A stretch of DNA of 64,000 bases, taken from contig CM074805.1 of the NCBI GenBank assembly GCA_037447605.1, positions 963,361 to 1,027,360 on the forward strand, read 5' to 3'. The position numbers and the translations under genes were made by a program. Source of the stretch: Zygnema circumcarinatum SAG 698-1b (Eukaryota; Plantae; Zygnematophyceae). The notes below the pieces were generated by a model. It saw only the letters and a program-made list of their open reading frames with translations. It searched no databases and was not told where the DNA came from. This document shows, piece after piece, positions 40,073 to 63,200 of the stretch (the stretch's first letter is position 1; every line of letters starts with the position of its first letter).

Positions 40073-41884
40073 ATGGCCTGCTGCGCGCAGCCCGCGTCGT
40101 GTTCGTACCTGGACAGCGTGGACGAGGAGGCGGGCTCGCTGGGCGGGGGCTGCTGCGGGGGCGAGGCGCCGCCCGGCGACGTGACGCATGCGGACGTCAG
40201 CGAGTACTACGGCAAGCACGTGCAGCAGACCAGCGATCTTCTCACGGCGGCGTGTCTGCTGGAGGTGGGGGAGGGGGCGCTGCTGCAAGGGTTGCTTTTG
40301 CACGGGCAGGAAATTGGTAGCGAAGGAGTGAAGGAACAGCAGCAGATATCGAATGTTAGTTGCAGAATCTGATTATAGAGGAGGAGAAAGACGACGATTT
40401 TTTAAGCATTTGTTGTAATTCATACGCATGGAAGGGCTGCACCAGAGGAGTTTGGCGCCTCGCGGATGATGATAACAGGGCTGAGGAAGATTAAAGATCA
40501 GCAGAAGGGTTTTTGTGGTTTGCTTGTGATTAACTAGATAACGACTTAAAAAGGAAATGGGCCGTCTCCTTCAATTCTAGGTTAAGATGACTTAGTGGCG
40601 ATCATGTGAGGCTTTCGCCTTCCTATAAAGAGCCGGTGTTGTAAGTAAAAACTAGGAAACATTTGCAGTCGGTCGAAACGAAGAAACTGCTTCCGAAATT
40701 TTAAACTATTTGCATTTTGCTGCTGGTGTTTCCCTCTGTGACGTTAAATAATAACTTAATTATGATGATTTTTATGTGTGCCGGAAGGGAACGTAGAATT
40801 ATGGTTGTTTTTGTTGTTTTCTTTTGGTTTGGCAAGAAGATCGGCGTATTCTGTTATCTCAAAGTCATGTCGGAAGTTTCATAATCAGTTTCTTCTCGAT
40901 CATTGTTGGAAACGATAGTCGAGAGGCTTCATAATGCTCTCCTTTAAATTTTCTTTTTACCATACGCATTAAAACTATGAAGATTGAATTGCTGAAGACA
41001 GGTAACCGAGGGTAGCTCTTATGGCCCCAGAAGTTGCCCTCTTTCTTGAAAAACTTACATGTGCTAGCGAGCTTATCTTTCGCGGCTGAATTGGAGGACA
41101 CAAGTCCTTGCTGTTTTTCCTCTTTCTCACAAATTATCACCATTTGGGGCGAGGGGGTGCAGGGCGAGGTAACCAAGGAGGTCCGAAAGCTTCTAAAGAA
41201 TGTGCATCCTGAGATTCTGGACAAGTTTTATGGCTGCGGCTCGCCCATCGCTCCCCTGCTCGAGGTGCCATGAAAGGAGCCTTTCTCTCTAACCTTCAAT
41301 TGTGCTGCTAAGAGGAAGCTGCTACTCGAAAGCTTTATCCTGCTCCTGTTCTCTTCTTTGTTCAACATTCCCCTCACTTTGAGTGCCCTTTTTTGTGGGA
41401 GCCACTTGCAGGGTGCGGTCGTATTGGATCTGGGGTGTGGCACAGGGCGGGATGTTTACACAGCTGCCCAGCTGGTCGGGCAGAATGGACGAGTTATTGG
41501 AGTAGACATGACAGGTAGGGGCAGTGCATTGCTCACAAGGAAGGGCTGCATGCAGTTTTAGCGTTAAACTGTGAGGGTTCGGGTTTTGACACGGAGAAGG
41601 GAAGGAAGCAGCTCTGATTGGAGTGGTGATGAGTGCAGACGAGCAGCTCGCAGTGGCGCGGAAACATGTGGAGTGGCATCGAGAGAAGTTTGGTTTCAAG
41701 GAGTCCAACGTTGAGTTCAGAAAAGCATTCATTGAAGACTTAAAATCAGCCAATATCCCGGATGAGTGAGAGAACATACCCCTTCCTGTCTCTCATGCCA
41801 ATGTGGGGATGTAAACGAGGGGGCCTCACGTTTCCAAGGTCCCTTCGTCCTTGATAAAGTCGATTAACTCGGTCCTCAAGTGCT

Positions 41885-41938
<54 letters not shown>

Positions 41939-42594
41939 CCCGCTGACTGTGAGGCCCTGTATGAATGGCAGATCCGTGGACGTAGTAATGTCAAACTGTG
42001 TGGTGAATTTAGCCCCCGAGAAAGAGCCAGTTCTTCGTGAAGTGTACCGCGTGCTGAAGCCCGGAGGAGAGCTTTACTTTTCCGACATGTACACCGATCG
42101 TAGGGTTCCGGCACATCTGCAAAAAGATAAGGTCAGGAAGGTCGGATCTCCTTTTTAACTTTTCATGGAATATTCTATTCTTATCCTGAGATTTCGCTGA
42201 AGAATTCGGGTAATTAAATACTGAAGGCTTGCAAGAGCTCGTGGTTGGCTCAGGTTCTATTTGGAGAGTGCTTGAGTGGAGCACTTTATATCGAAGACTT
42301 TCGCCGACTCATGGCAAAAGTTGGCCTTGCAGCCTGGGGTCCTACCACAGCTCGGCAAACTGCAGTGATGAATGCTGAGATAGAAGCAAAAGTGGGCGAC
42401 ATCACCTTCTACAGCATCACTGTGAGGGCCATTAAGGTCCCCTTAGAGGACGCTGAGGACTCTCCAGAAGATTATAAGCAGGTAAGAGAGTCTCCTCCCA
42501 CCAGAAAACAACCCTCTGTCAGTGGCCCTACATCGCAATCCATACCTCCCTACTTCTTCTTTTTAAGTGTTCCTAACGCTTCCTGCTCCTGGAT

Positions 42595-42626
<32 letters not shown>

Positions 42627-42943
42627 NNNNNNNNNNCCCCCCCCCCCCCCCCTCCCCCATGCAGCTGGCCACATACAAAGGGACCATTCCCGGACACCCT
42701 GACCTGTTCTCTCTCGACATGATGCGCATTTTCCCTACGGGCATTCCCACACGTGTGGACAGCACCACGGCAGCCGCCCTGCAGGTCTCCCGCTATGGAG
42801 CCGCGTTCGAAGTTTCGGAGAAGAAGGCGCACGGAGGGCCCTTTGGGCTGTGGCCGCTCCCTCTCGCGAGCAGGGCGGGGAGCGTGAAGGCGCTGGAGGG
42901 GTCCGCGCAGAAGGCGAGGGCTGGAGGGGGGTCCTGCTGCTAG
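40073..42943 (+). CDS. arsM: Arsenite S-adenosylmethionine methyltransferase (AS3MT/ArsM), 7 exons
   Basis: Exons 40073-40264, 41163-41264, 41412-41514, 41639-41765, 41972-42131, 42254-42481, 42665-42943. Motifs [64 protein letters not shown]; C-terminal CC. Confidence 0.93.
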
Positions 42944-43897: not shown

Positions 43898-46800
43898 TCA
43901 AATTGGTATAAGGTTGGCGTCAGAGGGTCCGTTTATGACCCGACCGAAGGAGTCGAACTGGGAGCCATGGCAGGGGCAATCGAAGGTCGCATCGTTGGGG
44001 TTCCACTGAACAACGCATCCGAGGTGAGGGCAGATGGCTGCACATCCACACCATGGCATTCAGTGAGGTGCTTTCGATTTCAGCATTCAACAAAGCATAT
44101 AGCATATGGCAGCTCATTTCCAGTTCATGCTTTGCACGATGACATTATCCAGCATCTGATAGGCAAAACTACCATGCATTGACGATTTCACAGAAGCACA
44201 CCGGCCATTGAACCTAGAGCTCAGATGGGCTTGCCTGTATAGCGATGCAGGATTCCCCGCTCGTCACGATACGCCGCAATTTTGACTCCGGCTTGCTGGA
44301 TTACCGCTCCGCACCCAGGAGCCAAGTCCTCTATGTCAACTTTGTCCGTACCAACAAATGGGACATAGTAAGCATAGCCCTGCCATCATGAAGATGACAA
44401 AGATTCAGCGACAGACATACATTCAACTTCAGCACATTCCTAGTGTGAGGTATTCTTAACAGAGACAACAAAGACAAGCTCGAGGAGGTGAAAGGCTGCA
44501 ACTTCGCTGAGTGCCAACCTGCAGGTTGTTCTGTACTTCCTCAAGCTCATTTCTGATAGTTGAGAGGTTGATAGGAGGGATTCTGCTGGGATTGTAGACT
44601 TCCGTCCAGGGGTGAGTCCGCCCTAAAATCTGAGAACTGATGACGATACCCGCAATAGTGGCACCTGTCAGGACTTGGCCGCTGTCCCCTGGAAACGGAA
44701 ATAATCGCACATACGGGAATTTCAGTGTTAAGGTCAGGAGTAAAGATAGTAGGGCGAGAGTGAGCCAGAAACAATAGTACTTGTCGTGTACACTATGCGA
44801 ACTGTGGAGAGTATTTAGCCAGAATTTTAAAGTTCAATGGAAAAGCTCCTTAAAATCGTTTAGAGGAAGTAGCCGACTACATAAAGAGCTTCCATCCAAC
44901 TGCAAAAAAACTGACCACTAAAAATAATAGGCAGCAGGCTCCGATGTTGATCAACCAAATGTAACTTGTGCCATCTCGACCGACTACAACTGGTTGAAAT
45001 GGGTCAAAGACAAACATACCAGTAGCAATGTATGTGTTTGTCAAGTTTCCCGGATCTCTGCCGTAAAGTCCCAAAAAGTCGATCGGTTTGTAGGCCTGCA
45101 ATTTCAAGCAATACATTCCACCACCTGAGAGAGGCACAGTGCTAATAACATTTAAGTTCCCATTTAAGTTAACATGTAGCTAAAAACACAGAGCGAAAGC
45201 AAGTTCGAGAGTGAACCTGCCCCGTCCATTGGTAGACCACTTCTTTGGCTGCGGGCCACTTCGTGCGAGCCCAATTTTCCAGCTTCAGCCATGCATTCAC
45301 ATAGCTATCTGGGCGGATGCCGGAGCGGTGGTTTTCACCCCCCACTAAAAGAACATCATGGTCTGATTTTTCGACCAGTCTGACACTGTGATAGGCCGAC
45401 TCAGTATCCCACCATAGGGCTCCTCTGCATGGCGGTTTTCATGCAATTCAGAAGGGGGCTATGCCTGAAGGTAACAAAGAAGGTAACGTGCTTCAAAGCT
45501 CACAAGTTTACAACCACTTCAGGTGTCATGATAGGCAAGGACACTGGTTCAGGGTTCACGAAAACATGCGGCACGAATTTGTTTCGTTGGAGTTTTCACT
45601 CACTCAATGTCGCCCTTGTTCACTTTAAGCCCAATCATGTACGTCCGGTCGGGTTTCTGCCGAGCATGCACGAGCGGATTGCGATGAATTGGACAATGTG
45701 TGGCCAAAACGAGCGCATGTGCCTCCACATATCCACTTTTGGTGTACACAGTTGCACCGGACTTTTTGCGCATGGGGCTGTCTTCGTAAATTTTTCCTCC
45801 ACGTTTTACGATCGCACGAGCAAGACCATTCAGATACCTATTGTTCCGAAAATCAGCAAAAGCTGCTGTAATCAGTTGTTTGCTGAGCTTGTCGAGACAA
45901 TAGATATAGAGTCTACTTTTTGAACGACTTTGTCTCCAAGAAAAGAGCAAGCACCTTCAAGTTTATTCAGTCAAAAAGCTCAGCGTTTGAAGCTTCATCC
46001 AAAGAATGATTCATACTTCAATATGTGCCTCAGAGTATATAGCGCTGGGTTTGCTTATTTACCAGAGGATAGTTATTGAATTGTGGCTGCTGCGATCCTT
46101 GCACGACATTGAAAGTATAAAACTCAAAAAGGAGATCAGAAAAGTAATTCGGGAATAAAACTCACATGAGAGGGTGAAGCTCTGCAGCATTAGCCCATTG
46201 AATGGCTTTGCGGATGCCTTTCGCGAGTGGCTTCTCTCCAAACTCAAGAAGGCGAGTATCAGTGAATCCCAGCCGCCTGCTTGCTTCATATTCCTACTCA
46301 GAACAACACAATGGCATCGTGGTACAAAAAAAAGTGCAGTTTCAGCATAGACAGTCGCACCAACTAAAAGCTTTATGTGTAATCCGAGTAAATTAGAACG
46401 TCTAGACAGAGAATCATGATCAGTTGGACGAAGGAAATAACCTTGATAAGCTTCGTGAGGGTAATATCTCTCTCATCGCTTGCAAATAGGTACCCGTCCA
46501 GTCGCTTGAAGTTGCAGTCGATTCCTTCTTCTTTTATTACATTTTCAACCCAGTCAATAGCCCCGCGATGGCTTTCCGCGACTAAAATGGCTTTCTCTGT
46601 TCCGAAAGCCTTTTCCACAACGTGGTAGTAGTCATCATTCCATGGCATGAGATGCCCAGTCGTTTTTCCTGATTGTCCATGTCCTGCAGCGAATAGAAGA
46701 TCAATATTAGATTGGAAATAGTAAAGGACAGCTTATACATCGCGTGCACAGTTGCTGAATACTACTGGTGACGACTACAACCTCGAGTGCGGTTGCAATC

Positions 46801-47075
46801 TTGAGCAGACCAAAGTACCTTTGCGTACCTATACACTTTGCCTCCAAAACAACCACTGATTTGCCCGCCTTCACAAGGTGATACGCAACGCTGAGTCCCG
46901 CGATTCCGCCTCCTACCACCACTACATCTGCTGAGATGTTGTACTCCAACTTTGGATACTTTATCGTTTGTTCGTGTTGGTCCCATACATTGCGACGAAG
47001 CCCAGGTGTCTTGTTCTCCTCCTGCAGCTTCATCTCAGCGTCATGAAGGTCTTTGGACAAGGTTAACTTGGCCAT
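43898..47075 (-). CDS. YhfW-like FAD-dependent oxidoreductase (DAO family) with C-terminal Rieske [2Fe-2S] domain, copy A (no N-terminal extension)
   Basis: ADVVVVGGGIAGLSVAY, GQSGKTTGHL, FHPL, YIATGDSGQVLTGAT, Rieske CPHLGC...DCPCHGSQF. In-frame TGA lies just upstream of the ATG at 47075. Confidence 0.9.
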
Positions 47076-48968
47076 ATCAAGATCTGTGAATTTTCACTGA
47101 GGCTGCATTAAAAAAAACGAAGCAGTGAAGAGCTCAGTAAGAACCTCACTAAGCAGACTGTATAGCATTCTAGAGGTCAGGAATCAGAGGAGTTTAGGCA
47201 AACACTCCGTCTGTAAATGGAAAGGGACCGGTTTCCTTTCTCAGGCATGCTTTGCACTCCGTGTTTTTCGTGTTAGAAACTGCTTAAGCATCATTTATGC
47301 GACTTCATGAAATTCACCGTTGATCGACGTTACGTAAAGCACGCTGCGCTCCATAAGCAAAGAGAGTTTAGGGCGTTTAGGGAGTTTAGCTTCTTACTTT
47401 TATCTCCCTTGCCTGCGGCAAAGCCGTCAATCTCTCAAAAAAACCAACTACCTGCGAAATTCCATCCACCAAACAGCTGTTCCCTCACGCCTGCCTATGC
47501 AGTTCCACCCAGCTTCAACTTTCCTGTTACCTCGCCGCTGAAGAGTCCATCCTCTTCATCCTATCGATCTCCAACGTCGAATTCCGAGCAGTCAGACATG
47601 GCAGCAGACAGATGGCAGACACAGATGGCAATAATATGCCTGCCGGCATGCAGCCCTGCCATGCAGAATGCCACGTCGCCCTGCTCTCCAAGTAAAAATT
47701 CGCCGCTCCCGCTCTAAGCATTCAGCAATTTCAGCAGCAGAGCCAAAATTGCTATTCTTTCTCCCCTCTAATCTCAAACATCCGAGCGCGACGCTGTCCC
47801 ATGGCAGCACTGCGCTGCTCCAGCATTGGATCATTGAAGGGGGGCTCGTGCAGCCTGTCGACCGTGCGCTTGCTTTCTGGGAAGGAAGGATGCGCATAAG
47901 CAGAATGAGGGCGAGGCTTCACTTGCTGAGAAAAAACGACTCTTACAAATTGCTGGCCGCATCGTGGGTGCGCTTGGAATGCTCATCGAACAACTTTCAA
48001 GTTTCCAATTGCGTGTGGACACACTCTGTGGTAACTTTGTTATTAGACGCATTCGTGGTAGGCATGGCATATGCTTGAAAAAAAGAAGAAATAGAGAGAA
48101 AAAAGTAAGGAAAAAAGAAAGAAAGAAAGAAGAAAGACGAAAGAAAGGCATGGCATGGCATGCTTGAAGGGCTGTCTCCTACTTGTGAATTATTCAGTCA
48201 GGCAGTTTGGTTCTAATCTCTGAGCTACCAAAACATGCTGTTCCATTGGGACCCTCTGAGAGTTGTCAAAATTTGGAGCTGAACAAGAGCATGACTCGTT
48301 CCTACCACGAGAACCTGCTTTGGCATTTCCATAGCAGTTTCAAACTATACTTCGTGAACAAATTTTCACATTGTGAACAGGCTTTCAGTGAAAAATCCGA
48401 TGCTTTTGTTCTCGGTTTTTCCCGAGGCCCTTCGCAACTGCTTCAAGAGCCGTGTTGTTGTTGTTGGGTCTAGAAGCAAAGTTTAAGCTCAGAGCTTTTC
48501 CTTTCGTCCTTAGGTCCTATGTGACCGGTTCCTCGTGGTTCTCGATCTTGCTTATGTCCATGTCCTACCAGCGTCAACTGCCCCACGACCAGCACACTGC
48601 TGCTGCCAGACAAAATTCTCAATCCAGGCTTATCTGTACAACACCACTTTCCTCACCCACTCAGCCGTCGTCTACTTTTCTATGTCTGTACACACACCCA
48701 AATGCTCAAACACCTGAAAGTTGCAGCCACCCCTTGCCATATTCTTGAACTCTGCAGAGTTCCTTTGGCTTTTTGATTCCCAAACTCCTCTGCCTTGCTC
48801 TCCAACATCAATCAAGAGCTCAACAAAACGCTCATGTCAACCCAAACTCCATGAAGACTGCCTTTGTTTCCCACCCCCCCCTTGTCCTTCATCACTCCCT
48901 TCCCCAAAGCAGGCACCCCTGTCATCCAGGCAGCGTGCTTTTCCCCCTCCCCTGCGCTGCCCCTCCCG

Positions 48969-50761
48969 TCACATGGGCTGCAGGCTCGCCTTGGCGGGCC
49001 CGTTGATGAGCCGACCGAAGGAGTCGAAGTTCGAGCCATGGCAGGGGCAGTCGAAGGTCGCGTCGTTAGGGTTCCACTGCACCACACACTTCATGTGCGG
49101 GCAAGTCGCTGCACGCACAAAGCGAGACATGCAAGGGCCGGCGGTTTTAAAACATGTTCTATTCAATGTCACATTGGCTTCCACGCTCAAGCACCCGGAG
49201 ATACATCTCAGCAGCAGCCAAGCAATGAGTAAGCTGCAGGAAGGAAGTAAGTCTCTGATTCCAAACGGGGCTTTCAACGAATCATCATTTGAATGGCAGC
49301 ACCGTTTCTCAATCATCCATACAGAGTTACAGCTCATGAACAGACGAAGGAAAAAAATTGGGAGGAAAGTCGGAAACAGCCTTGCCTGTATAACGGTGGA
49401 CTTTCCCTTCTGTATCGCGATATACCGCGATTTTGTGCAGGCCCTCTTGGAGCACGGCCCCGCAGCCGGGCCGCAGGTCTTCTATGTCGACGCTGTCACT
49501 TCCAATGAACGGAATGTGGTAGGCAAAACCCTAACACACATGGACATGGAGAAGATACGCACAAGCTGGGGCTCAAGAACATAGTCAGGACCTCATAAAA
49601 CATCATGACCAAATAGACATAGCTAAGCATGGGGCTTCTCCAGTCTGGAAACTGAAAACGAGGCATAAAAAAAAACACCTGGAAACCCTTCAAACAGTTA
49701 CTTTTCGATTGTAGCGATGAGTTGTAGAGAAACAGGTGTCAGACAGTTGTGAGGAATTAGTGTATTCCAGCATCTTCATCCCTCCTGCCTCCCTCCCCCA
49801 CCTGCATTGTCTTCTTCGCTTCCTCCAGCTCCTGCTTCAGCGAAGTAATGGAGGCAGGAGGTAGGCGGCTCGGGCTGTATATGTCTGTCCACGGATGGGG
49901 CTGCCCCAAAATCTGTGAACTTATCACAATTCCGGCAATGGTGCCCCCAGTCATGCCTTCGCCACTGTCCCCTGCATTCGGCCCACAAGCGAAACAGGTT
50001 AGGGTTCAGCACAGGAAAGTGGAAACAGTGAAGTGGAGAGCTTTGTTTTGTCAGCATATGACAACCAACCCCGGGATTCGGTCATCCGGAACCCCATGCA
50101 TTATTTCACATCTTTTCTTGTCAGATTCATTGTCAAGTATGAAAATTTGGAAATCATGGAAACCACTACCATACGTGCTGATATTTGACAACACAATGCT
50201 GAGCCCCACTCACCGGTGGCTACATAGACGTTCAAGTTGTTTGCCGGATCTCTGCCATACAGTCCCAAAAAATCGATGGGCTCGTACACCTGCCATCATC
50301 CCCAAAGAAGATATACTCAAACATAATTCACCACTTCCCTCAGGTAATCCTCTTTCCCTAGACTCTCACTTCCCCCTCTATCTTGCCTACCCCTACCCTT
50401 CTTCCTCTTAAACATGGGCCCTAAAACATGGGCCCAAAACAGAACCATAACCGAGAGAGGAAAGGCCCTACTTGGCCAGACCACTTGTAGAGTACTTCTT
50501 TGGCGGCCGGCCACCTGGCCCTCGCCCATTCGTCCAAAGCGGCCCACGTGTCATAGTATTGGCTGGGCCGCATTCCGGCTGGGTGGTCCTCGCCGCCGAT
50601 TAGGAGCACATCCCACTCTTCCTTCTCCTCCAGTCGGACGTAGTGGTAGGGCTCTGCCGTGTCCCACCATGTGGCCCTCCTGTCAAGGTGGAGGAGGGAG
50701 TACAGAACACACCATTACTTAACAAGGAAAGGATAACATCTTTCCCCAATTAGCTGCGCTT

Positions 50762-50823
<62 letters not shown>

Positions 50824-50838
50824 AAGAGAAAGAGAGAG

Positions 50839-50907
<69 letters not shown>

Positions 50908-51201
50908 AGCCAGACCATATGAAAGGGGAGAGTTTTGTGTCATCTAACTCACTTGATGTCGCCCTTGTTGACTTTGAGGCCGACCACATAAGTGCGAACC
51001 GGCTTCTGGCGAGCATGCACGAGCAGGTTGTGGGTGATCGGGGAGTTGGTGGCCAGAACGAGGGCCTCCGCCTCCACTTTTCCCTTGGACCCCACTGTCC
51101 GTACAGAAGTCCGCTCCTGCTCAAAGACCGGACTCTCCTCAAATATCTTCCCTCCCCGGCTTACTATCGCAGCAGCAAGGCCATTCAGATACCTGCGCTC
51201 A

Positions 51202-51298
<97 letters not shown>

Positions 51299-53238
51299 TA
51301 GCATGAGACGGAATCGAAATTTGACCAAAAAATACAAAAAATATTAACACGAGCGTAAAAAAAGGGTGTAAGTTTGGCCGAGAGTTACTCTCAATATAAA
51401 AAGTTCGGTCCCTTTTGACAACATTATGCATCAGTATTACAACGTGTAAAGGCTCAGAGCCGCGAGTTCACATGAGTGGGTGAAACTCTCCACTATCAGG
51501 CCACTTGACAGCCGTACGAACGCTGCCAAAAGAGGGGTCTCCTTTAAGGTCGTCATAGTATATATTCGCGAAACCCATCCGTCTGCTGGCCTCGTACTCC
51601 TATAAAAAGACGAATGGGCCGATGTCAAAACGTGCAAAATTGAACAAGCTGTGATAAAGAATGGCTGCCGGTTTCTCCACCCCCGGAGTGAGGCCGCTGA
51701 AATAGTCTAGAAAAGAAAAATTGCTGGACATTAAGTTCACAGCTTCGGAATGTGGTTTTCAAAACCATTTCCACCAGAAACCGGAAGCCTGAAGAAAGGA
51801 AAGTGGGAGCAAGCTTTCAAAAACTGACCAGGCGGAGTTTTTGCAGAGTCTTTTCGTCATCGTTGTGGGGAAACAGATACCCATCCAGCCGCTTGAATTT
51901 GCAATCGATTCCCTCTTCTTTTACCACATTTTCAATCCAATCGATAGCCCCCCGGTGGCTTTCTGCGACCAAGCGAGACTTTTCTTCTCCGAAAGCTTCC
52001 TCAAGCACGTGGTAGTAGTCGTCATTCCACGGCATAAGGTGAGCTGTGGTCCTGCCTGTCTGACCATACCCTGCTCAAACAGCAACCCGTACAGCATAGG
52101 TCTAAGAGTATTGACTCAAGTTTAATACAAACGTTATGCTATACCAAGAGCATGAGTCTGCTCTACTTGATCAAATCATGAATCATTCATTAAAATCCCC
52201 ATAAGCATGGAAAGACATAACTCACCTATACACTTTGCCTCAAGAACTACCACGGACTTCCCTGCCTTCAGCAGGCTGTAGGCGATACTCAGTCCTGCAA
52301 TTCCTCCTCCTACAACCACCACGTCCGTCTTAATAGTCCCTTCCAGGGACGGATATTGTGGTTTCAAGTCTTGTTGGTTCCACACAGTGGGCCGGAGTCC
52401 CGGGAGCTTCTCCGTCTGCTGCAGCTGCACTTCAGCAGTTGTTGTCGCCATGGCACGCATTCCCTTTCCTTTGCGCAGAGGTTCAAGAGCCTTGCGAAGG
52501 TAGTTTCGAGACGCACTCCAGCACATCTGCACAAAGAAAGGGGACACCGATTGGCAGATGCGATAAAGATACAAAGAAAAAAGAGAAGAAAAGGAAACAC
52601 CACGCTCACTCAAGGTACTAAATCGAGAACGTGCTTACAATCCTGGGAGTCTAGATACCTCTTCATGCGTTCAGAATGGTGTATCCAAACAAATCTTTTG
52701 GCCAGCAGACAAGCCTAAATCCTCGATCTCTGGGAGGATGTTTATGAATTGGGAGGTGCTTACTGGTTTCTTCACAACTCACACACTTTGCTTTCGCATA
52801 GACCATAACACCGCTTGCAGTAAGCCCTTCCCCATTTCCCGATTGTTCGTTTGTAAACTGCACACTTACATGCTCGCGCACTCTTTCTTTCGAAACGCCG
52901 ATTGCTTGCACTGCCAACTCAGTACCGAAAGGCTGCAATCTAGCGTGTCTCGACTTGGTCTTCGTGGAAAATGCAATTCCAGTCAGCGGAGAATACTCTT
53001 TGGACGATGTACCCCTCCACACTTTCTCCCAACATATCAGCTGGCTTTCCCCGAACAAGGGGCGTCTTGCGCCGCAGAAACTGTCTACCGCCAGGAGTGA
53101 TAGACCATACATTGCACTCGGCCTTTCTCCGCGTCCAAGACAGCCCCTGCAAGCAGCAGAAGGACGCTGCAGCCAGCAAGGCCCGACGGCGCCCTTCTGC
53201 GGTAGTCCCGGCGTGCCGGCACGGGCATGCAAGGCCAT
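48969..53238 (-). CDS. YhfW-like FAD/Rieske oxidoreductase, copy B (probable long N-terminal presequence)
   Basis: Same motifs (GGGIAG, GDSGEGMTGGT, CPHMKC...CPCHGS). Upstream exon 53238-52870 ends at a GTAAGT donor, in frame with the acceptor at 52527. Alternative starts at 52526 or 52451. Confidence 0.85.
50762..50906 (+). repeat. (GA)n intronic microsatellite; others at 24527-24570, 41886-41936 and 51204-51295
   Basis: Direct inspection. Confidence 0.95.
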
Positions 53239-53476
53239 GCAATTAGCCACCGGCTTGTGCGACTTCTGGGGGGCTTCGGGAACCTTTTTGCCTCGGCTTT
53301 TGGCCACGCCGGAGTTGGGGGGGACCCTCTAGGACGAGCCTGTTTGCACCACATGAAACATGGGATTGGAATGGGTCTCACGATGGCGATGCCATGAGAA
53401 CAAGTACATGGACAAAAGCAACACGGAGAACCACGAGGACCCGCTCATAAAGACCTAAAAACGAAAGGACAAAGCT

Positions 53477-53599
53477 TTTTTCTTTTGTGCTTAGTTCCTT
53501 CGCGACCAGTTCCTCGTGCTTCCTTCCCCATGCTGATTTTGTCCATGTACATTTGATGGCATCATCGCCATCGTGAGATCAATGCCACTTCCCTCCCTG
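53477..53599 (-). mobile_element. Short retroposed element (SINE-like or LINE 3' end) with A-rich tail and 12-bp target-site duplication
   Basis: AAGGACAAAGCT flanks it at 53465-53476 and 53600-53611, with a T-run at the left end. Homologous copies at ~35116-35220, ~48496-48566 and (opposite strand) ~53362-53462. Confidence 0.7.
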
Positions 53600-53827
53600 A
53601 AGGACAAAGCTATGAGATGAAATCTACCTCTATGTTAGAAAATTTGTCGTACTTTATCCCCCAACATGTTGGCAATGGCTCCAAATGGCTCTAGGGCGCC
53701 CATTCAAGCCCATCGAGAAACCCGCATTGTTGCCATCAACATCAACATCAACAACTCTGTGTTTGGCCAAACCTGCCGCTCGCTCAGTTCTCAGTTTCCA
53801 ACATGGAACATGTTACCTCCTCCGCTT

Positions 53828-53960
53828 GCCACGTGGCGCAACCACCGCGCGGCACCGACCCCAGAGTCCGGAAACGTTCCGCATGTGTGCCACGTGGCAC
53901 TTCGTTCCAGAAAAAAGCGCTATCAAACGGCAGCCACGTAGACAAGGGCGTCCACGTGGC
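53828..53960. promoter_or_regulatory. G-box/ABRE cluster in the bidirectional promoter of oxidoreductase copies B and C
   Basis: GCCACGTGGC at 53828, GTGCCACGTGGCAC at 53887, GCCACGTA at 53933, CCACGTGGC at 53952. Confidence 0.65.
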
Positions 53961-54216
53961 ACTCTGCATGGCAGGTTACGTCTCAGTCCTTGCGGACATG
54001 GCTTCCAAGTGTCAGCGACCTGCCCAACAACGTTGCCTTCAAGCCCTGGGGACGAAGGAGGTCATCCTTTGGCAGGATTTAAAAATTTGAAGGCTTTCAG
54101 GCTGGAAGAGGAAACGCAGGGATTTTGCATTTGCAGGGGTCAGAGGATTGACAGAATTTTTGGAGTTCCAGGAACGGGAGAGAGGAGGACGAGGAGGAGG
54201 TGAAAGCGGTCGGAAA

Positions 54217-57200
54217 ATGGCGGCATTAGGCGTTGCAGGGTGTTCGACTTCTTGCACTGCGAGATTGACGAGATTAGGTCGTGTGGAAGGGCCTGAGAGT
54301 CTGCTGAAGAGCGGCTGGCTGAGCAATGCTTGCGGTGAATGGAGGCTGAGACCGAAAATAAAGGCACAAGTGAGTGGAGGAGATTCTGGTTTGGCGGTTC
54401 TCGGGAGTGTGGATGTATGCTTAGCTGAATGGCACTGCTTCCCTGTTTGCTGGATTAGATTCACGCTCTGAATGTTTCAGACAAAGTGTGATGACAATGG
54501 TTTCGATCGGCCAATGCCGCTTTGTTGCAATGACTGGGAGGGAAGCCAACAAGTTAAACTGCAGATGCCAACACCTGGTCTTATTGTCCAATCAGTAGAG
54601 GCTTCTCTGAAACAAAGTTCTTTACGTGCGTTCCTGATCTAGGCAGGCAATTTGTCATGAAATGATTGAAGTACAAGTCTTTCTTTGTATTATATAGGAT
54701 TTCCGACGAGGCAGTGTGACTTAATACATTCACAAACTGTAGAACTGGCAGAATTGTTTGACTTTTTATTCTATCATACGGACGGAAACGTCACGGAAAA
54801 ATCATTGATATTGAGGGCAATGCTATGTGATAAGCACTTTTTCTGGGGGTGTTATTAGTGCACGATTAAGAACTAAATTGCGAAGCAATGTTTTCACAAA
54901 TACTGTCGGTTGAGTAACCAGGCGCTTTGATGAGCCGTGACTGAAAAACTGTGTCTTGACCTCTTTTTAGGTCCGCTTAAGCCGAATCTCAGCCTCGTCT
55001 CAAAAGGCTGATACGCATGAGAACGTCCAAGATAAAGCTCAATCTGGGCCAGCCGGCAGTAACGGCAAGTCCGCAGCAAAGAGCAATGGCAAATCGAATG
55101 GAAACGGACAGATGCCTTCAGGCAGGCCAGTGCAGAAATTGACAGGCGGAAGTTTGGAGGAGGCTGTGCCCGGGCTGAGGAGGACTGTGTGGGACCAACA
55201 GGACCTGCGCCCAACTTATCCGACACTCAATAAAAATTTACGTGCTGATGTGGTTGTAGTAGGCGCGGGCATTGCTGGGCTAAGTGTAGCGTACAATCTT
55301 GTCAAAGCCGGGAAAAAGGTTGTCGTCCTCGAAGCGAAATGCATTGGTAAGGGCTTTTATCCACAACCTTGGCTTGCCTTTATCATCATATATCAGCATC
55401 AGCACAAGGAAAACTGTGTGTAATTTCTTTGGCGTCGAAAAGGAAATTATGTTCCAGCGAGTGATGTATTGTTCCCCTGTGGGGCTGATCGTGGCAGGAA
55501 GCGGACAGACAGGAAAGACTACAGCTCACCTTATGCCCTGGAACGATGACTACTACATGATGCTTGAGCAGCTCTTTGGGCTGAAAAACGCAGCTCTTGT
55601 AGGAGACAGCCATCGAAAGGCCATTGATTGGGTGGAGAATATCGTAAAGGAGGAGGAGATTGACTGTGAATTTTCCAGAGTTGACGGTTACCTGTTTCCG
55701 CATGACGATGCCAATTCAACATATGAAATGCTATTTTCCGTAAGTACTCCAACTTCTAACCTCCGGCTTACTCCGTTGACCTAGTGAGCTGGCTTGAAGG
55801 CGCTTTATTACCACGCAGATGATCCGGAGATCTTAAACTATCAGAACTGACAAGCTCCATCCTTTCATGTTTTGCGGATGGTACAGGAGTATGACGCGGC
55901 GAAACGAGCAGGATTTGACACTATTTCCATCATCGATGGCGGTGGAGATCCTTCGCTTGGTTCAATGCGTACAGCCATCAAGTGGCCTATGGCAGCCGAT
56001 TTTCATCCGCTGAAGTACGTTATGCAAAGACGTAAATCTCCTAAAATACGTTCCCCTGCTGCTAAAGAAAGGCTGCCCATAGTTTATGATTCCACGATTC
56101 ATTCCTTTACCTCCTTTTCCTTTAGTTTCTACAATCGCAAGTACCTTCGAATGCTTTAACAGCACCAATTTTATCTGTTGCAGATACATTTCCGGGCTTG
56201 CAGCGGCAATCGAGAAAATGGGTGGTCAAATATTCGAGCAGAGTCGAGTGATGAACCAGGAAGGGACGAAAGTCTCTACAACCGACAGGTTTTCAGTGTC
56301 TGCGGATGCAGTTGTCCTGGCAACGAATTCCCCAATTAATCACAACCTTGCGGTTCACGCTCGCCAGCCAGCGGATCGGAGCTATGTCATTGGTTTGAAG
56401 GTGAAGAAAGGCGATATAAAGTGAGTCCCCTCGCTTCCTTCTGGGTCAAACCAACTGAATTTCTGACGAGATAAACTTGGTCGACTCGCATAGACCCAAA
56501 CAATCCAATTCAATTCAGCCCTTCCAAGACCAGATTGTCAGGCTTTGAGATCTTGGCTTTTTGACTAACCTTAGCTAAGCCTTTATCGGAACTGAAAAAT
56601 GCATTCTGTGTAACTGCAGAAAAGCACAGTGGTGGGATACATTTTCTCCTTATCACTATGTGCGCCTGGAGGAAAAAGAAGGTTTTGACGTACTGGTGGT
56701 GGGAGGCATGGATCATCCTGTCGGCATTCCAAGCACCCAGGACTATCCAGCTGCTTATGAGGACCTTGAAAAATGGGCCAAAAAGCGGTGGCCAGCTGCG
56801 GGGGAAATCATTTATAAGTGGACTGGCATGGTCAGTGAGAGGCTATAATGGCAAGCAAACTGCGATAATCTGGTAGATTTGCAGCGCTGCCTTCACCGAA
56901 CTCGACATGATTCTAATAATTATTTTGCTGCCAAAATCGTATGATGTGCAGGTGTACAAGCCAGTAGACCTTCTGGGCCTCTACCACCACGACCCTCTCA
57001 ATTTCGGCACGAACACATACATCGCCACTGGTAAGGTCACTTCGTTGTGACGATGTTTGCATACAACGAACAAAGCAACCTATTTGAAGAGCTCGTCAGT
57101 TTGAGCTTCTGCGTGTTTCATACACCTGAACGAAACACTCTACCTATATTGCTTTTGGGTAGTAGCCGAGCCCGAGTCAGGGTAGTAAATAAGGGCAACA

Positions 57201-58143
57201 GGCCTACCCTTTTAAGAGGTGATACTGAATATGTCAATTGTACACCGTGCAGGCGACAGTGGGCAGGGCATGACAGGCGGCACAATCGCAGGATTAGTCC
57301 TTTCCGATCTGCTTACAAGCCGGCAAAACCCGTGGAGCAACCTTTACAACGCCAGCCGTCCTCCTCCACCTCACCCTTCTGTTCTTCAGAGCGTTGCCAC
57401 TGCTACGGCTCACACTGTGCAGGTACAAATCGTACAAATTCTTAGTTGAGCTTCACTCGCCATGCGCTTGCTAGGCTCTTTTATATAATGTTGAGGAATG
57501 TCGCAATACGTCCGTGTCGAAAATGACTTGATTCAATTTTGGGGTTGGCCTTTGCCGAACGTCGGATGAGAAGATAGGGCATTGCTTTCGATGGTTTACT
57601 TTCTAATTTACATGACATTTTTGTAAATTTCCAATACAACCGTATGAAGCCTGAAGTTTTATTCATTTGGAATGCCCTGGGCTTATGTATGTGCAGGGCT
57701 ATGCCAAGACGATTCCTGGATATGGTAACGACTTCGTTTCTATCAACAGGATGAGCCCCGGAAGCGGAGCAGTCATCAACCAAAGGCTGGACAAGATAGC
57801 CGTGTATAAGGATGAATATGGTGTCACGACCAAATTCTCAGGTCTGCCGCTTTTTCCCTTTTGCAAAGCGCCTGATTATTTTCAGAATCGCTGAATGCAG
57901 TTCAGCCTTGTTGGAATGACCTGATCCTCAGAATCATTTAGCGTAGGAGTCAGAAACGATGTCGTCTGAATGCTTCACTGCCAACTTGTGCCTCTTGCAG
58001 CAATCTGCCCTCATCTCAAATGCGCAGTCAGTTGGAACCCGAAGGATTCCACATTCGACTGTCCCTGCCACGGCTCGCAATTCGACACAAAGGGACGCTG
58101 CATTCAGGGACCGGCCAAGGCGAATCTGCCTATTGTGCCATGA
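54217..58143 (+). CDS. YhfW-like FAD/Rieske oxidoreductase, copy C (transit-peptide-like N-terminus)
   Basis: Exon 54217-54369 splices in frame to 54971. Motifs GAGIAG, GQTGKTTAHL, FHPL, GDSGQGMTGGT, CPHLKC...CPCHGSQF; stop at 58141-58143. Confidence 0.88.
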
Positions 58144-60275: not shown

Positions 60276-63200
60276 CTATCGGGGAAGGAACCCCCCCTGC
60301 CTTATTCTTGCTGCCTCTTTCCATATCAAATCGTGAAAAACAATTTCCCCGTAATCCCGCACCATTATGGTCCTCGCACTTTCATTGTACATCACCATAC
60401 AGCAAAAATCTGGAAGGACTGCAGGCAACCCTCTGTAGTGGCCCAGCCATGCATCCTTTGCATCTACAACTGCCGTGTGGTTTTCTGTCTTCTCCAGCAA
60501 GTGATAAGAGATGAGCTCATGGACCTTCACGAGCACAACCTTGCGCGGATTAAGGACCCATTTCCGCCGTCCATCCGTTGACGCGCACTTCCAATGTCTC
60601 TCTTTGTATTTCCAAGGACGTATGCAGGTTGGCCTCTCATCTCGATACACCATTTTCTCAACATCCCACATTTCCTTACTAGTCCCAGTACGGCAATGGT
60701 GGATAGAATACGGTACAACCCCAAAACTGATGGCAGGCATGTCCTCGTTTGCCTTTACAATGTCTCGCAGGGAAGCTGGGGGAGTGACGAAAAGGTATTC
60801 ATCTGTATCAAAATTGAGTACCCACCTGTATTTGAACGAAGAAAACAAAAAAAAAAGGGTTCAGAAAGCAGGACAAGCTACATGGAACAAACCAACCTGT
60901 AACTCCCTCCATCAATTCGCCTACCTTCAAATGAGAGCAAATGCATATACGTGTGGCTAATGAGCTCACTTTTTTACAAGATGAAAAACTCACTGCTAGA
61001 ATGAAAAGTGTAGGAATGTTGAAGTGACTCTCTTCCAAGGTGCTTCACTCAGGTGGGGTTTGCCTTATCATGACAGACTTTCAGAATTAAACGTCTGCAT
61101 GTTCTTCCTCAAGAATTGATTCCAAACTGTAAAAGATTACATCAGTTAATTGAGGTTCGCTGTGGCGAGGCAAGAGCATAACTTACCTAGCGAAGGGTCG
61201 TGCTCGCAGGAGACAGTCGTGAAGGAATAATTGTTGATTTGCGTAGTATCCTGAAAACCGGCCCTGTTCATACGCATTGACATAAGTTACCAGTCTCGCT
61301 TCTCGAAAACGCCGCAACCTTTGAGCAGTGGCATTCGATAACCCTCCCAAATCATAGATAAAAAAATGCACTCGTGGCCGGAGTAAGCCATGGTGGTACA
61401 TATACCACTCAGCCACCGCTGAGGGTCGGCGAGTAAGGAACAGCGGTCCGCTGCAATGTGCAAATTCTATAGGCAGTTCCTGCTGGGTCTTGTAGAACAG
61501 ACTGTTTATCCGGCCTTCGTGATACACCAGCATTGGCGTTCCACTTGCAATAAGCTTGTCAGCGATTTGTACTGCACAACACCATAGACTCAGAACGAGA
61601 AGAATTCAGAAATACTGAGAAATGCCAACAGTAAGCTCTAGTCAAAGACCGTCACACTCTACCAAAAGTTCTTTTTAATTCCCACCGATCAAGATTTAGA
61701 TACAGAAAACAAAAACGCACATGTTCCAGGAGGCGCGTTGATGGGTTCACTATTATTCATGTGCCCTAAACCGTAAACCCGCCCTTCAGCGCTTAGAACC
61801 CTAAACCCTGCATCTAAACCCTTAAAGCCCTAAATCCTAAACCCTTATAACCTGAACCCTAAAATTCGTCAATGGAAGACCTACGCCTGGACTAAGCCTG
61901 GCCTCAGAGTAGCCTTCGTAAGCTCAAGTGCTCTTATAACATGATCATGTAGCCTATGATACGTTACATTAAGGCAAGCTTTCTAGAGGAACAATTCCAT
62001 AACATTCTACAAGAGTACCATTCAGACAGGCTCATTAGAGAAGCCCAAAACCATTATCTTGAAGCTACTGAGTGCAATCTCTTTTTACTCAAGTGATGAA
62101 TAAATGTTTCCCAGGAATAAGCATTAGAAAATGACCATTTTTTTTCAGCTCATTGGAAAACATACCCCTTTGATTTGCAATAAGAAATAAGAAGCCACCC
62201 TCTCCTCCAGCTCCAACCTCTTGTGGGAACTCGCACTTGGCAAGCACATGCACATAGGTTCGCTGGTGGTTTCCACCACCACGGAAAAATTTTGGGCGTC
62301 CAAATATAGCGACATCTAACAACCTGCAAAAGTTCACGTTTGTGGCCTTAAGCTTGAATCGGGGCAGGTGCAGAAATACCTCGGAGTTATGCATTAGACG
62401 AAGGTTGGTTTGACTCGAACACAAAGGTGAAGCATATTCACGTAAACAGCCTGAGTCATCCCATTATCAGGTTTCGACCATCAAGTGAAAACTGTCTGCA
62501 AAAATGACCCCAAAGCCTTCCAGCTTCCTCAGGTTACCTAGTAAGTCACAACATCAACATCATCACAGTAACTGACATCTCATTCTTGTTCCATACGCGA
62601 CTTTGTTCAGGGTTTACTAGAAAATCATCCTGGAGCCTTCTTTGAATGATATGAACAACAAAACCCTATCAGGTAATAAGGAATGACAAAGTCTTTGTCG
62701 ATGCTCAGTGAAAGTGAACAAGTCGGTGCAAGACTACCATTGATCACAGACTGGCATTCATCAAAGCTTCCCGCAGATCAGCACTTCTCATTATCACATT
62801 ACAATTAAAGATGAAGTTTCTGCAACAGACCATGAACCATACCATTAAGGTCCTAACACCAAAGGCGAAAAACTGTGAAATTCCACAGGCCACTGCTTGC
62901 AAAGCGATCAGTAAAAAGTGATGCTCCTTGGAACTAACTGATCGCGGTTGAGCGGTCGCTCAAGCTGGAGAAGCTCTCGCGGCAGCCACATGCACTCGTC
63001 GAAAGACTCTTTTCTTTGCCATTTTTCCCCCTGGGCTGGGGAAAGGCCCAGAACCCAAAATGAGTCCAATGACTGTCGATAAGAGCTGCCACCTCGAAAA
63101 CCCATTCAACCGTGTCAATAGTTCATGAAGTATGACCATACAATTGTATACCACAAGGTTGACACAAACCGGCATTACCGTACAAGAAGAAATTTGATTA

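Follow-up and report, generated by a model that had tools for sequence, protein, structure and literature searches.

The locus considered here raises the question of whether a cluster of bacterial-looking genes in a zygnematophycean alga is a recently acquired enzyme system or an old possession of green plants. It lies in a 64,000-nucleotide stretch of Zygnema circumcarinatum SAG 698-1b (NCBI GenBank assembly GCA_037447605.1, contig CM074805.1, positions 963,361 to 1,027,360 of the forward strand), hereafter the window, whose own positions are used throughout. Three genes in it, A, B and C, each encode a flavoprotein in which a DAO-type flavin adenine dinucleotide (FAD) domain is fused to a Rieske domain. 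A first-pass annotation of the window had proposed a Bacillus YhfW-like enzyme that was probably acquired by horizontal gene transfer (HGT), then duplicated and retargeted to several compartments as an amine-oxidation system. The analysis showed instead that this is an ordinary, anciently inherited and uncharacterized family of the green lineage, present as a three-gene cluster, and not a new HGT-derived system. Taken jointly with the mechanism and the sorting proposed below, the reading of the locus as a tandem cluster of three functional paralogs of an ancient green-lineage flavoprotein is considered rather probable.

Gene Models and Cluster Organization

Exon cores were identified in translations of the region in every frame, with the three stretches matched against one another, after which splice sites were enumerated. 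The paralog comparison gave nine collinear homologous exon cores per copy, and the enumeration left a single consistent gene model for each, with eight introns at identical aligned positions (phases 1, 0, 2, 2, 0, 1, 0 and 1). Intron 8 was of the GC-AG type in A and B and of the GT-AG type in C. The joined frames were intact, and the pairwise identity of the predicted proteins was 65% for A/B, 57% for A/C and 59% for B/C. The nine cores, eight introns and open frames bear out the earlier description of three intact paralogs with matching intron positions. All three copies lay within 14 kb, with B and C arranged head-to-head. The models below rest on high-scoring segment pairs between the paralogs, splice-site enumeration and an assembled intact frame:

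43898..47075, minus strand: gene A, 529 aa; exons 1-5 at 47075-46829, 46683-46442, 46293-46166, 45837-45604 and 45424-45217; exons 6-9 at 45095-45020, 44688-44519, 44379-44235 and 44037-43898 (stop included)
48969..52460, minus strand: gene B core, 527 aa; exons 1-5 at 52460-52226, 52070-51829, 51599-51472, 51192-50953 and 50679-50472; exons 6-9 at 50289-50214, 49971-49802, 49530-49386 and 49108-48969
55112..58143, plus strand: gene C core, 529 aa; exons 1-5 at 55112-55346, 55498-55739, 55887-56014, 56184-56420 and 56620-56830; exons 6-9 at 56952-57030, 57253-57422, 57697-57841 and 58001-58143

The introns flanking exon 4 of gene B contained long (GA/CT)n microsatellites (window 50750-50943 and 51200-51300), which produced long Ser-Leu and Arg-Glu pseudo-ORFs in the list of open reading frames (ORFs).

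Domain Architecture and Family Membership

Remote searches were run exon by exon, and the database homologs P0002, P0185 and P0160 served as stand-ins for full-length searches and for the fold; the joined models of A, B and C were used only locally, for alignment, BLAST against fetched proteins and trees. In each protein, about 528 residues long, the DAO-type FAD domain came first and the Rieske domain, in which all four cluster ligands were present, formed the C-terminus. The two diagnostic exons were:

A 46829..47075 (minus strand), B 52226-52460, C 55112-55346: FAD dinucleotide-binding exon with GxGxxG (Pfam DAO, E 9e-11 for A, and alignment)
A 43898..44037 (minus strand), B 48969-49108, C 58001-58143: Rieske cluster-binding exon (Pfam Rieske, E 7e-9 for A)

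Pfam DAO was also matched by exon 4 of A (E 3e-5). Alignment of the joined models showed GxGxxG, the CxH...CxxH ligands and two disulfide cysteines in all three copies, as the first reading of the window had stated for GxGxxG and the ligands, and the CPH..C and CPCHGS boxes were kept throughout. Two extra cysteines forming a disulfide are typical of the Rieske proteins of the b6f and bc1 complexes.

The presence of PF01266 and PF00355 in one chain placed A, B and C in the YhfW-type family of DAO + Rieske fusions, and they aligned collinearly, over their full length, with bacterial family members at 40-44% identity. They share with Bacillus subtilis YhfW the order of the two domains and a length of about 510-530 aa, and to this extent the comparison with Bacillus YhfW was apt. 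Orthology to YhfW was rejected, however, as the Bacillota sequences formed the most distant clade of the tree (28-32% identity), whereas the window genes carry introns and belong to a separate green-lineage clade.

Other assignments were likewise rejected. The top NCBIfam match of the last exon of A was b6f PetC-like (E 5e-17), at 62 bits against a cut-off of 250. The b6f/bc1 Rieske subunits (PetC, QcrA) resemble the three proteins in the cluster-binding boxes, including the two disulfide cysteines, and gave the top PDB and NCBIfam match of the last exon, but they have an N-terminal membrane anchor and belong to a quinol oxidase complex, whereas the domain here is the C-terminal end of a soluble flavoprotein of 528 aa. 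In Rieske non-heme iron oxygenases the Rieske domain is followed by a mononuclear-iron catalytic domain. An enzyme of that kind (PAO, TIC55 or CAO type) was rejected since the Rieske domain occupies the last 50-90 residues with nothing behind it, and no oxygenase domain was found by Pfam, either scanned here or precomputed. The named DAO-fold enzymes (glycine, sarcosine and pipecolate oxidase, D-amino-acid dehydrogenase) were rejected as no curated NCBIfam threshold was reached: the best scores of the orthologs P0160 and P0158 were 85-91 bits against cut-offs of 600-633 (AmaA, Phn_aa_oxid), and ThiO scored 43-51 against 251.

Distribution in the Green Lineage

An exhaustive search with exon 2 of A retrieved 993 proteins, the best full-length ones being from Closterium, Chara, Chlorokybus and Cryptomeria. 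Among the matches listed, the same architecture occurred in land plants (Selaginella, Riccia, Ceratodon, Sphagnum, Ceratopteris, Adiantum, Cryptomeria), streptophyte algae (Spirogloea, Mesotaenium, Closterium, Chara, Klebsormidium, Chlorokybus) and chlorophytes (Coccomyxa, Elliptochloris, Parachlorella, Micractinium, Nannochloris, Gonium), so that the family ranges over chlorophytes, streptophyte algae, bryophytes, a lycophyte, ferns and a conifer. In word searches with full-length homologs, many bacterial matches came after the green ones, at about 42-47% identity. No angiosperm was present among the 120 matches listed per full-length query, the conifer query included, in agreement with the earlier remark that the architecture is not recognized from angiosperms, and this suggests that the family was lost in flowering plants. 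Clusters of two-domain look-alikes were also found in Ascomycota and archaea.

The named green relatives formed one clade with A, B and C at 47-60% identity, the top matches of 61-63% being transcripts. What sets the window apart from them is the occurrence of three copies in one 14-kb cluster with B and C head-to-head. Transcripts or proteins of the same species were not found in the databases, the highest identity to any database protein fetched being 63%, and no paper on the plant family was found in the searchable literature. The two Riccia paralogs were 22.6 Mb apart and thus not in tandem.

Two adjacent same-strand gene pairs were seen in Spirogloea muscicola, on scaffolds s6 (1269219-1278577) and s20 (406024-415246). 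Each pair combined two different subclades, and the window pair is not necessarily orthologous to these tandems. In the P0168 gene of Closterium sp. Naga37s-1 (L083:4735-5530), the last intron contained a unit that repeats the opening 14 codons of the final (Rieske) exon and occurs seven times in tandem, at intervals of about 125 bp.

Phylogeny and Origin

The tree comprised 90 rows, including 41 named bacterial loci and 45 green-lineage sequences, and all supports given here are Shimodaira-Hasegawa-like approximate likelihood ratio test values (SH-aLRT) from quick trees. All 45 green-lineage sequences formed one clade (SH-aLRT 100), whose main groups roughly followed the species tree. Chlorophytes and the earliest-branching streptophyte algae, Klebsormidium and Chlorokybus, fell outside the group formed by Chara, Zygnematophyceae and land plants, with poor support for the outer branching; the deep relations among the subclades of Chara, Zygnematophyceae and embryophytes are not resolved by this tree. 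All eight introns (8/8) of A, B and C coincided in alignment column with introns of the two genes compared, P0157 of Riccia and P0168 of Closterium. Monophyly of the green sequences, the order in which their main groups branch and the introns held in common mean, taken together, long vertical inheritance, and they show that the family was anciently inherited in the green lineage with its introns.

Within the clade, A and B were sisters (SH-aLRT 98-99) and grouped with a Mesotaenium protein and P0160, encoded by an A/B-type transcript of run ERR12684109 (SH-aLRT 97 in one tree and 94, unstarred, in the other). C was sister to the transcript-derived P0158 of the same run (602 aa, 63% identity; SH-aLRT 98-100). 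Forcing A, B and C into one clade, a group named post hoc with the tree already seen, made the tree 51 log-likelihood units worse (approximately unbiased test, AU, p 0.02). By this topology the pair of A and B is recent and C is an older paralog, and the AU result places the split of C from A/B before the alga diverged from Mesotaenium and the source organism of run ERR12684109.

A recent transfer from bacteria to this alga or its close ancestors, followed by duplication, would account for an architecture that is mainly bacterial and for bacteria providing the nearest sequences outside plants (40-44% identical to A, B and C). It is nevertheless hardly credible, as the green sequences, from chlorophytes to a conifer, are monophyletic, the eight introns are common to a liverwort and a desmid, and A, B and C are closer to other plant sequences (51-63% identity) than to any bacterium. 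The signature of recent HGT, with bacterial nesting, patchy relatives and no old introns, was not found, and the tree returned ancient vertical eukaryotic inheritance, which had been named beforehand as the outcome refuting HGT; the first-pass annotation's "probably HGT-derived", taken in the recent sense, did not survive. An ancient bacterial source for the green clade as a whole is possible. One such source would be the cyanobacterial ancestor of plastids, the family having entered the green lineage by endosymbiotic gene transfer, which would explain the plastid-type extensions described below. The b6f-like Rieske domain, the transit-peptide-like extensions on many plant members and a protein from "Nostoc sp. 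2RC" placed among the mixed bacteria adjoining the green clade are in its favor. However, the two other cyanobacterial sequences sampled were far from the green clade (30-34% identity), the bacteria nearest to it formed a mixture of poor resolution (Acidobacteriota, Planctomycetota, Bacteroidota, Gemmatimonadota and Pseudomonadota), and the look-alikes extend to Ascomycota and archaea, so that this origin is regarded as improbable.

N-Termini and Predicted Sorting

The first-pass annotation had suggested from their upstream sequence that the three copies are sorted to different compartments, with a putative mitochondrial-type cleavage site in B. A strong 3' splice site was found shortly upstream of the core ATG in each gene, and the following features were delimited:

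47094..47104, minus strand: 5' end of gene A; likely acceptor (T-rich tract, AG 47104-47103), in-frame TGA 47096-47094, ATG at 47075
52461..52526, minus strand: 22 extra in-frame codons of gene B; ATG directly after a strong acceptor (long pyrimidine tract, CAG 52529-52527)
52870..53238, minus strand: candidate upstream exon of gene B, 123 codons; ATG 53238, good donor CAT/GTAAGT after 52870, phase 0
54217..54369, plus strand: candidate upstream exon of gene C, 51 codons; ATG 54217, strong donor CAA/GTGAGT after 54369, phase 0
54971..55111, plus strand: 47 in-frame stop-free codons of gene C, from a strong acceptor (pyrimidine tract, TAG 54968-54970) to the core ATG at 55112

In gene A, the TGA at 47096-47094 was read seven codons before the ATG at 47075, confirming the in-frame stop reported earlier. 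If the acceptor is used, any upstream exon would be untranslated and A would be without a presequence; judged from this arrangement, the lack of an N-terminal extension in A is quite likely.

Coding potential was expressed as a codon score per codon, with a non-coding mean of -0.42 and values of 0.17-0.59 for true exons. The 22 codons of gene B scored 0.21, which 2% of null windows reached. The candidate 123-codon exon, whose phase 0 fits the acceptor 52527/52526, scored 0.04; its frame was open with P ~0.006 by shuffling, a value for a frame picked after the fact, and it contained no Pfam domain. For gene C, the 47 codons scored 0.13 (reached by 1% of null windows) and the 51-codon candidate -0.07 (reached by 11%). 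There is no ATG inside 54971-55111, so this segment would be coding only if the exon at 54217-54369 is spliced on. The first 60 residues of the candidate N-terminus of C had 18% Ser/Thr, 17% Arg/Lys and 5% Asp/Glu. A word search with exon 1 of C and its extension matched only the core part, in fragments from other species. The ORFs and splice signals proposed earlier for the added exon of C and the 123-codon exon of B exist, both exons being putative. The candidate scores (-0.07 to 0.21) lay between those of non-coding sequence and true exons, and we consider a coding extension to be probable in C and slightly doubtful in B.

Relatives fell into long forms, with Ser/Ala/Arg-rich, plastid-transit-peptide-like extensions of 40-100 residues, and short forms beginning about 45 residues before GxGxxG, so that paralogs with and without an extension, as described for the window, recur across the family. 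No peroxisomal C-terminal signal was found in the short forms. A Riccia gene had an extra first exon holding only the extension. Two transcripts of one related organism (run ERR12684109) lend indirect support to extensions in the window genes. The C-type P0158 had an N-terminus 75 residues longer, of transit-peptide type, with an in-frame stop upstream. In the A/B-type P0160 (L082:1-414), 138 open in-frame codons preceded the called ATG (P ~0.006 by shuffling), containing methionines and then an Arg/Ser/Ala/Leu-rich stretch, and the called start is probably not the true one.

Differential sorting of A, B and C is therefore a plausible prediction, best supported for C versus A. C would carry a plastid-type transit peptide from a separate 5' exon, B may bear another extension and A none, and the enzyme would then be at work in at least two compartments.

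Conservation of the Three Copies

At 85 columns conserved in at least 95% of the green relatives, A departed six times, B not at all and C three times, compared with a median of 1 and a 90th percentile of 4 in the other sequences. The changes in A included the GGEDH and PYHYVR motifs. The branch of A (0.37-0.49) was about twice as long as that of B (0.16-0.22). A is intact yet the most derived and fastest-evolving copy.

Predicted Function and Mechanism

No reaction is known for any member of the family, and for B. subtilis YhfW, of unknown function, the published study reports only expression in competence and metabolome shifts in a mutant (PMC7317962). The predicted structure of the ortholog P0160 (predicted local distance difference test, pLDDT, 91.6; predicted template modeling score, pTM, 0.91) had its best matches in L-proline dehydrogenase, glycine oxidase, D-arginine dehydrogenase, opine dehydrogenase, sarcosine oxidase beta and L-amino-acid deaminase. 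These enzymes oxidize a C-N bond next to the carboxylate of their substrates, and several are dehydrogenases that feed a partner. For the FAD and substrate domains of the model, the template modeling (TM) scores by target were 0.70-0.81 against such amine and amino-acid flavoenzymes of the DAO fold (L-proline dehydrogenase beta, 1y56_B; glycine oxidase ThiO; D-arginine and opine dehydrogenase; sarcosine oxidase beta), which were also the top PDB sequence matches. They differ from A, B and C in having no fused Rieske domain and only 15-20% identity. For the Rieske part, b6f PetC was the best PDB sequence match. A PDB sequence search with a single exon gave no match, and no solved DAO-Rieske fusion was found in PDB sequence or structure searches.

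The nature of these fold matches makes a route from an amine through FAD and the Rieske center to an external one-electron acceptor the likeliest one that we can infer. The FAD domain would oxidize the C-N bond of an amine or amino-acid-like substrate, and the two electrons would leave the reduced flavin singly through the fused Rieske center to the acceptor. The enzyme would accordingly act as a dehydrogenase and not as a hydrogen peroxide-forming oxidase.

Alternative Readings of the Cluster

Several observations weigh against three functional, differently sorted copies with this mechanism. The gene neighbors of the bacterial homologs were not conserved, no neighbor family occurring at more than four of 59 loci, and both the substrate and the electron acceptor are purely inferred. 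In codon usage the upstream candidates were well below true exons (-0.07 to 0.21 against 0.17-0.59), the candidate N-termini of the window genes had no similarity to those of relatives, and the upstream regions of A, B and C had no homology among themselves. Finally, A exceeds 90% of its relatives in departures at conserved residues, and so may be losing or changing its function.

Part of this evidence would fit a simpler arrangement, in which translation of all three copies begins at the core ATGs (47075; 52460 or 52451; 55112) and the proteins share one compartment, the cytosol, in plain tandem redundancy, the upstream ORFs being chance or untranslated 5' exons. The weak codon scores of the upstream candidates and their want of homology to anything agree with this, as do the many relatives, the Mesotaenium protein of the A/B clade among them, whose annotated form is short (524-535 aa). 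Strong acceptors nevertheless precede all three core ATGs, with the frame open behind them in B and C and not in A; moreover, C has a complete long form as its nearest relative, and the nearest relative of A/B has its 138 open codons before the called ATG. We therefore hold starts at the core ATGs throughout to be unlikely. That copy A is a decaying or neofunctionalizing duplicate and no third working isoform is suggested by its branch, about twice that of B, and by six changes at conserved columns against a median of 1, but its 529-codon frame is intact, its splice sites and cluster ligands are all kept and its codon score is similar to those of B and C, which makes this quite unlikely.

Intergenic and Flanking Sequence

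Between B and C (~53367-53590), the intergenic region repeated a 75-bp stretch from upstream of A (~48493-48566) at 83% identity and also contained an inverted repeat of about 230 bp (72%). The shared sequence, which lies in two promoter regions, may be what is left of a small transposon. Immediately ahead of the cluster were exons of an S-adenosylmethionine (SAM)-dependent methyltransferase (window 41880-42943, plus strand; Pfam Methyltransf_31, E 1e-11), and the translation of an ORF next to them crossed a short N run, which is an assembly gap. Downstream of gene C (window 60276-61533, minus strand), two ORFs had weak matches to glycosyltransferase family 92 (E 1e-4, just below the cut-off).

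Significance

The locus shows that a bacterial look combined with absence from angiosperms is not equivalent to HGT. What it presents is a conserved, uncharacterized green enzyme family that has two redox cofactors per chain, seems to have been lost from angiosperms and repeatedly occurs with both long and short N-termini. Homologs occur in tractable models, namely Marchantia-type liverworts, mosses, Selaginella and relatives of Chlorella, so that substrate, acceptor and location are directly testable. In its most specific form, a tentative reading that we judge unlikely as it stands, the family would be an unstudied flavin-Rieske dehydrogenase kept by green algae and non-flowering land plants as plastid-targeted (C, perhaps B) and untargeted (A) isoforms, passing electrons from an amine or amino acid through a Rieske center of high-potential type into organellar carriers. 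If this were true, such a dehydrogenase would give plastid redox metabolism a new point of entry.

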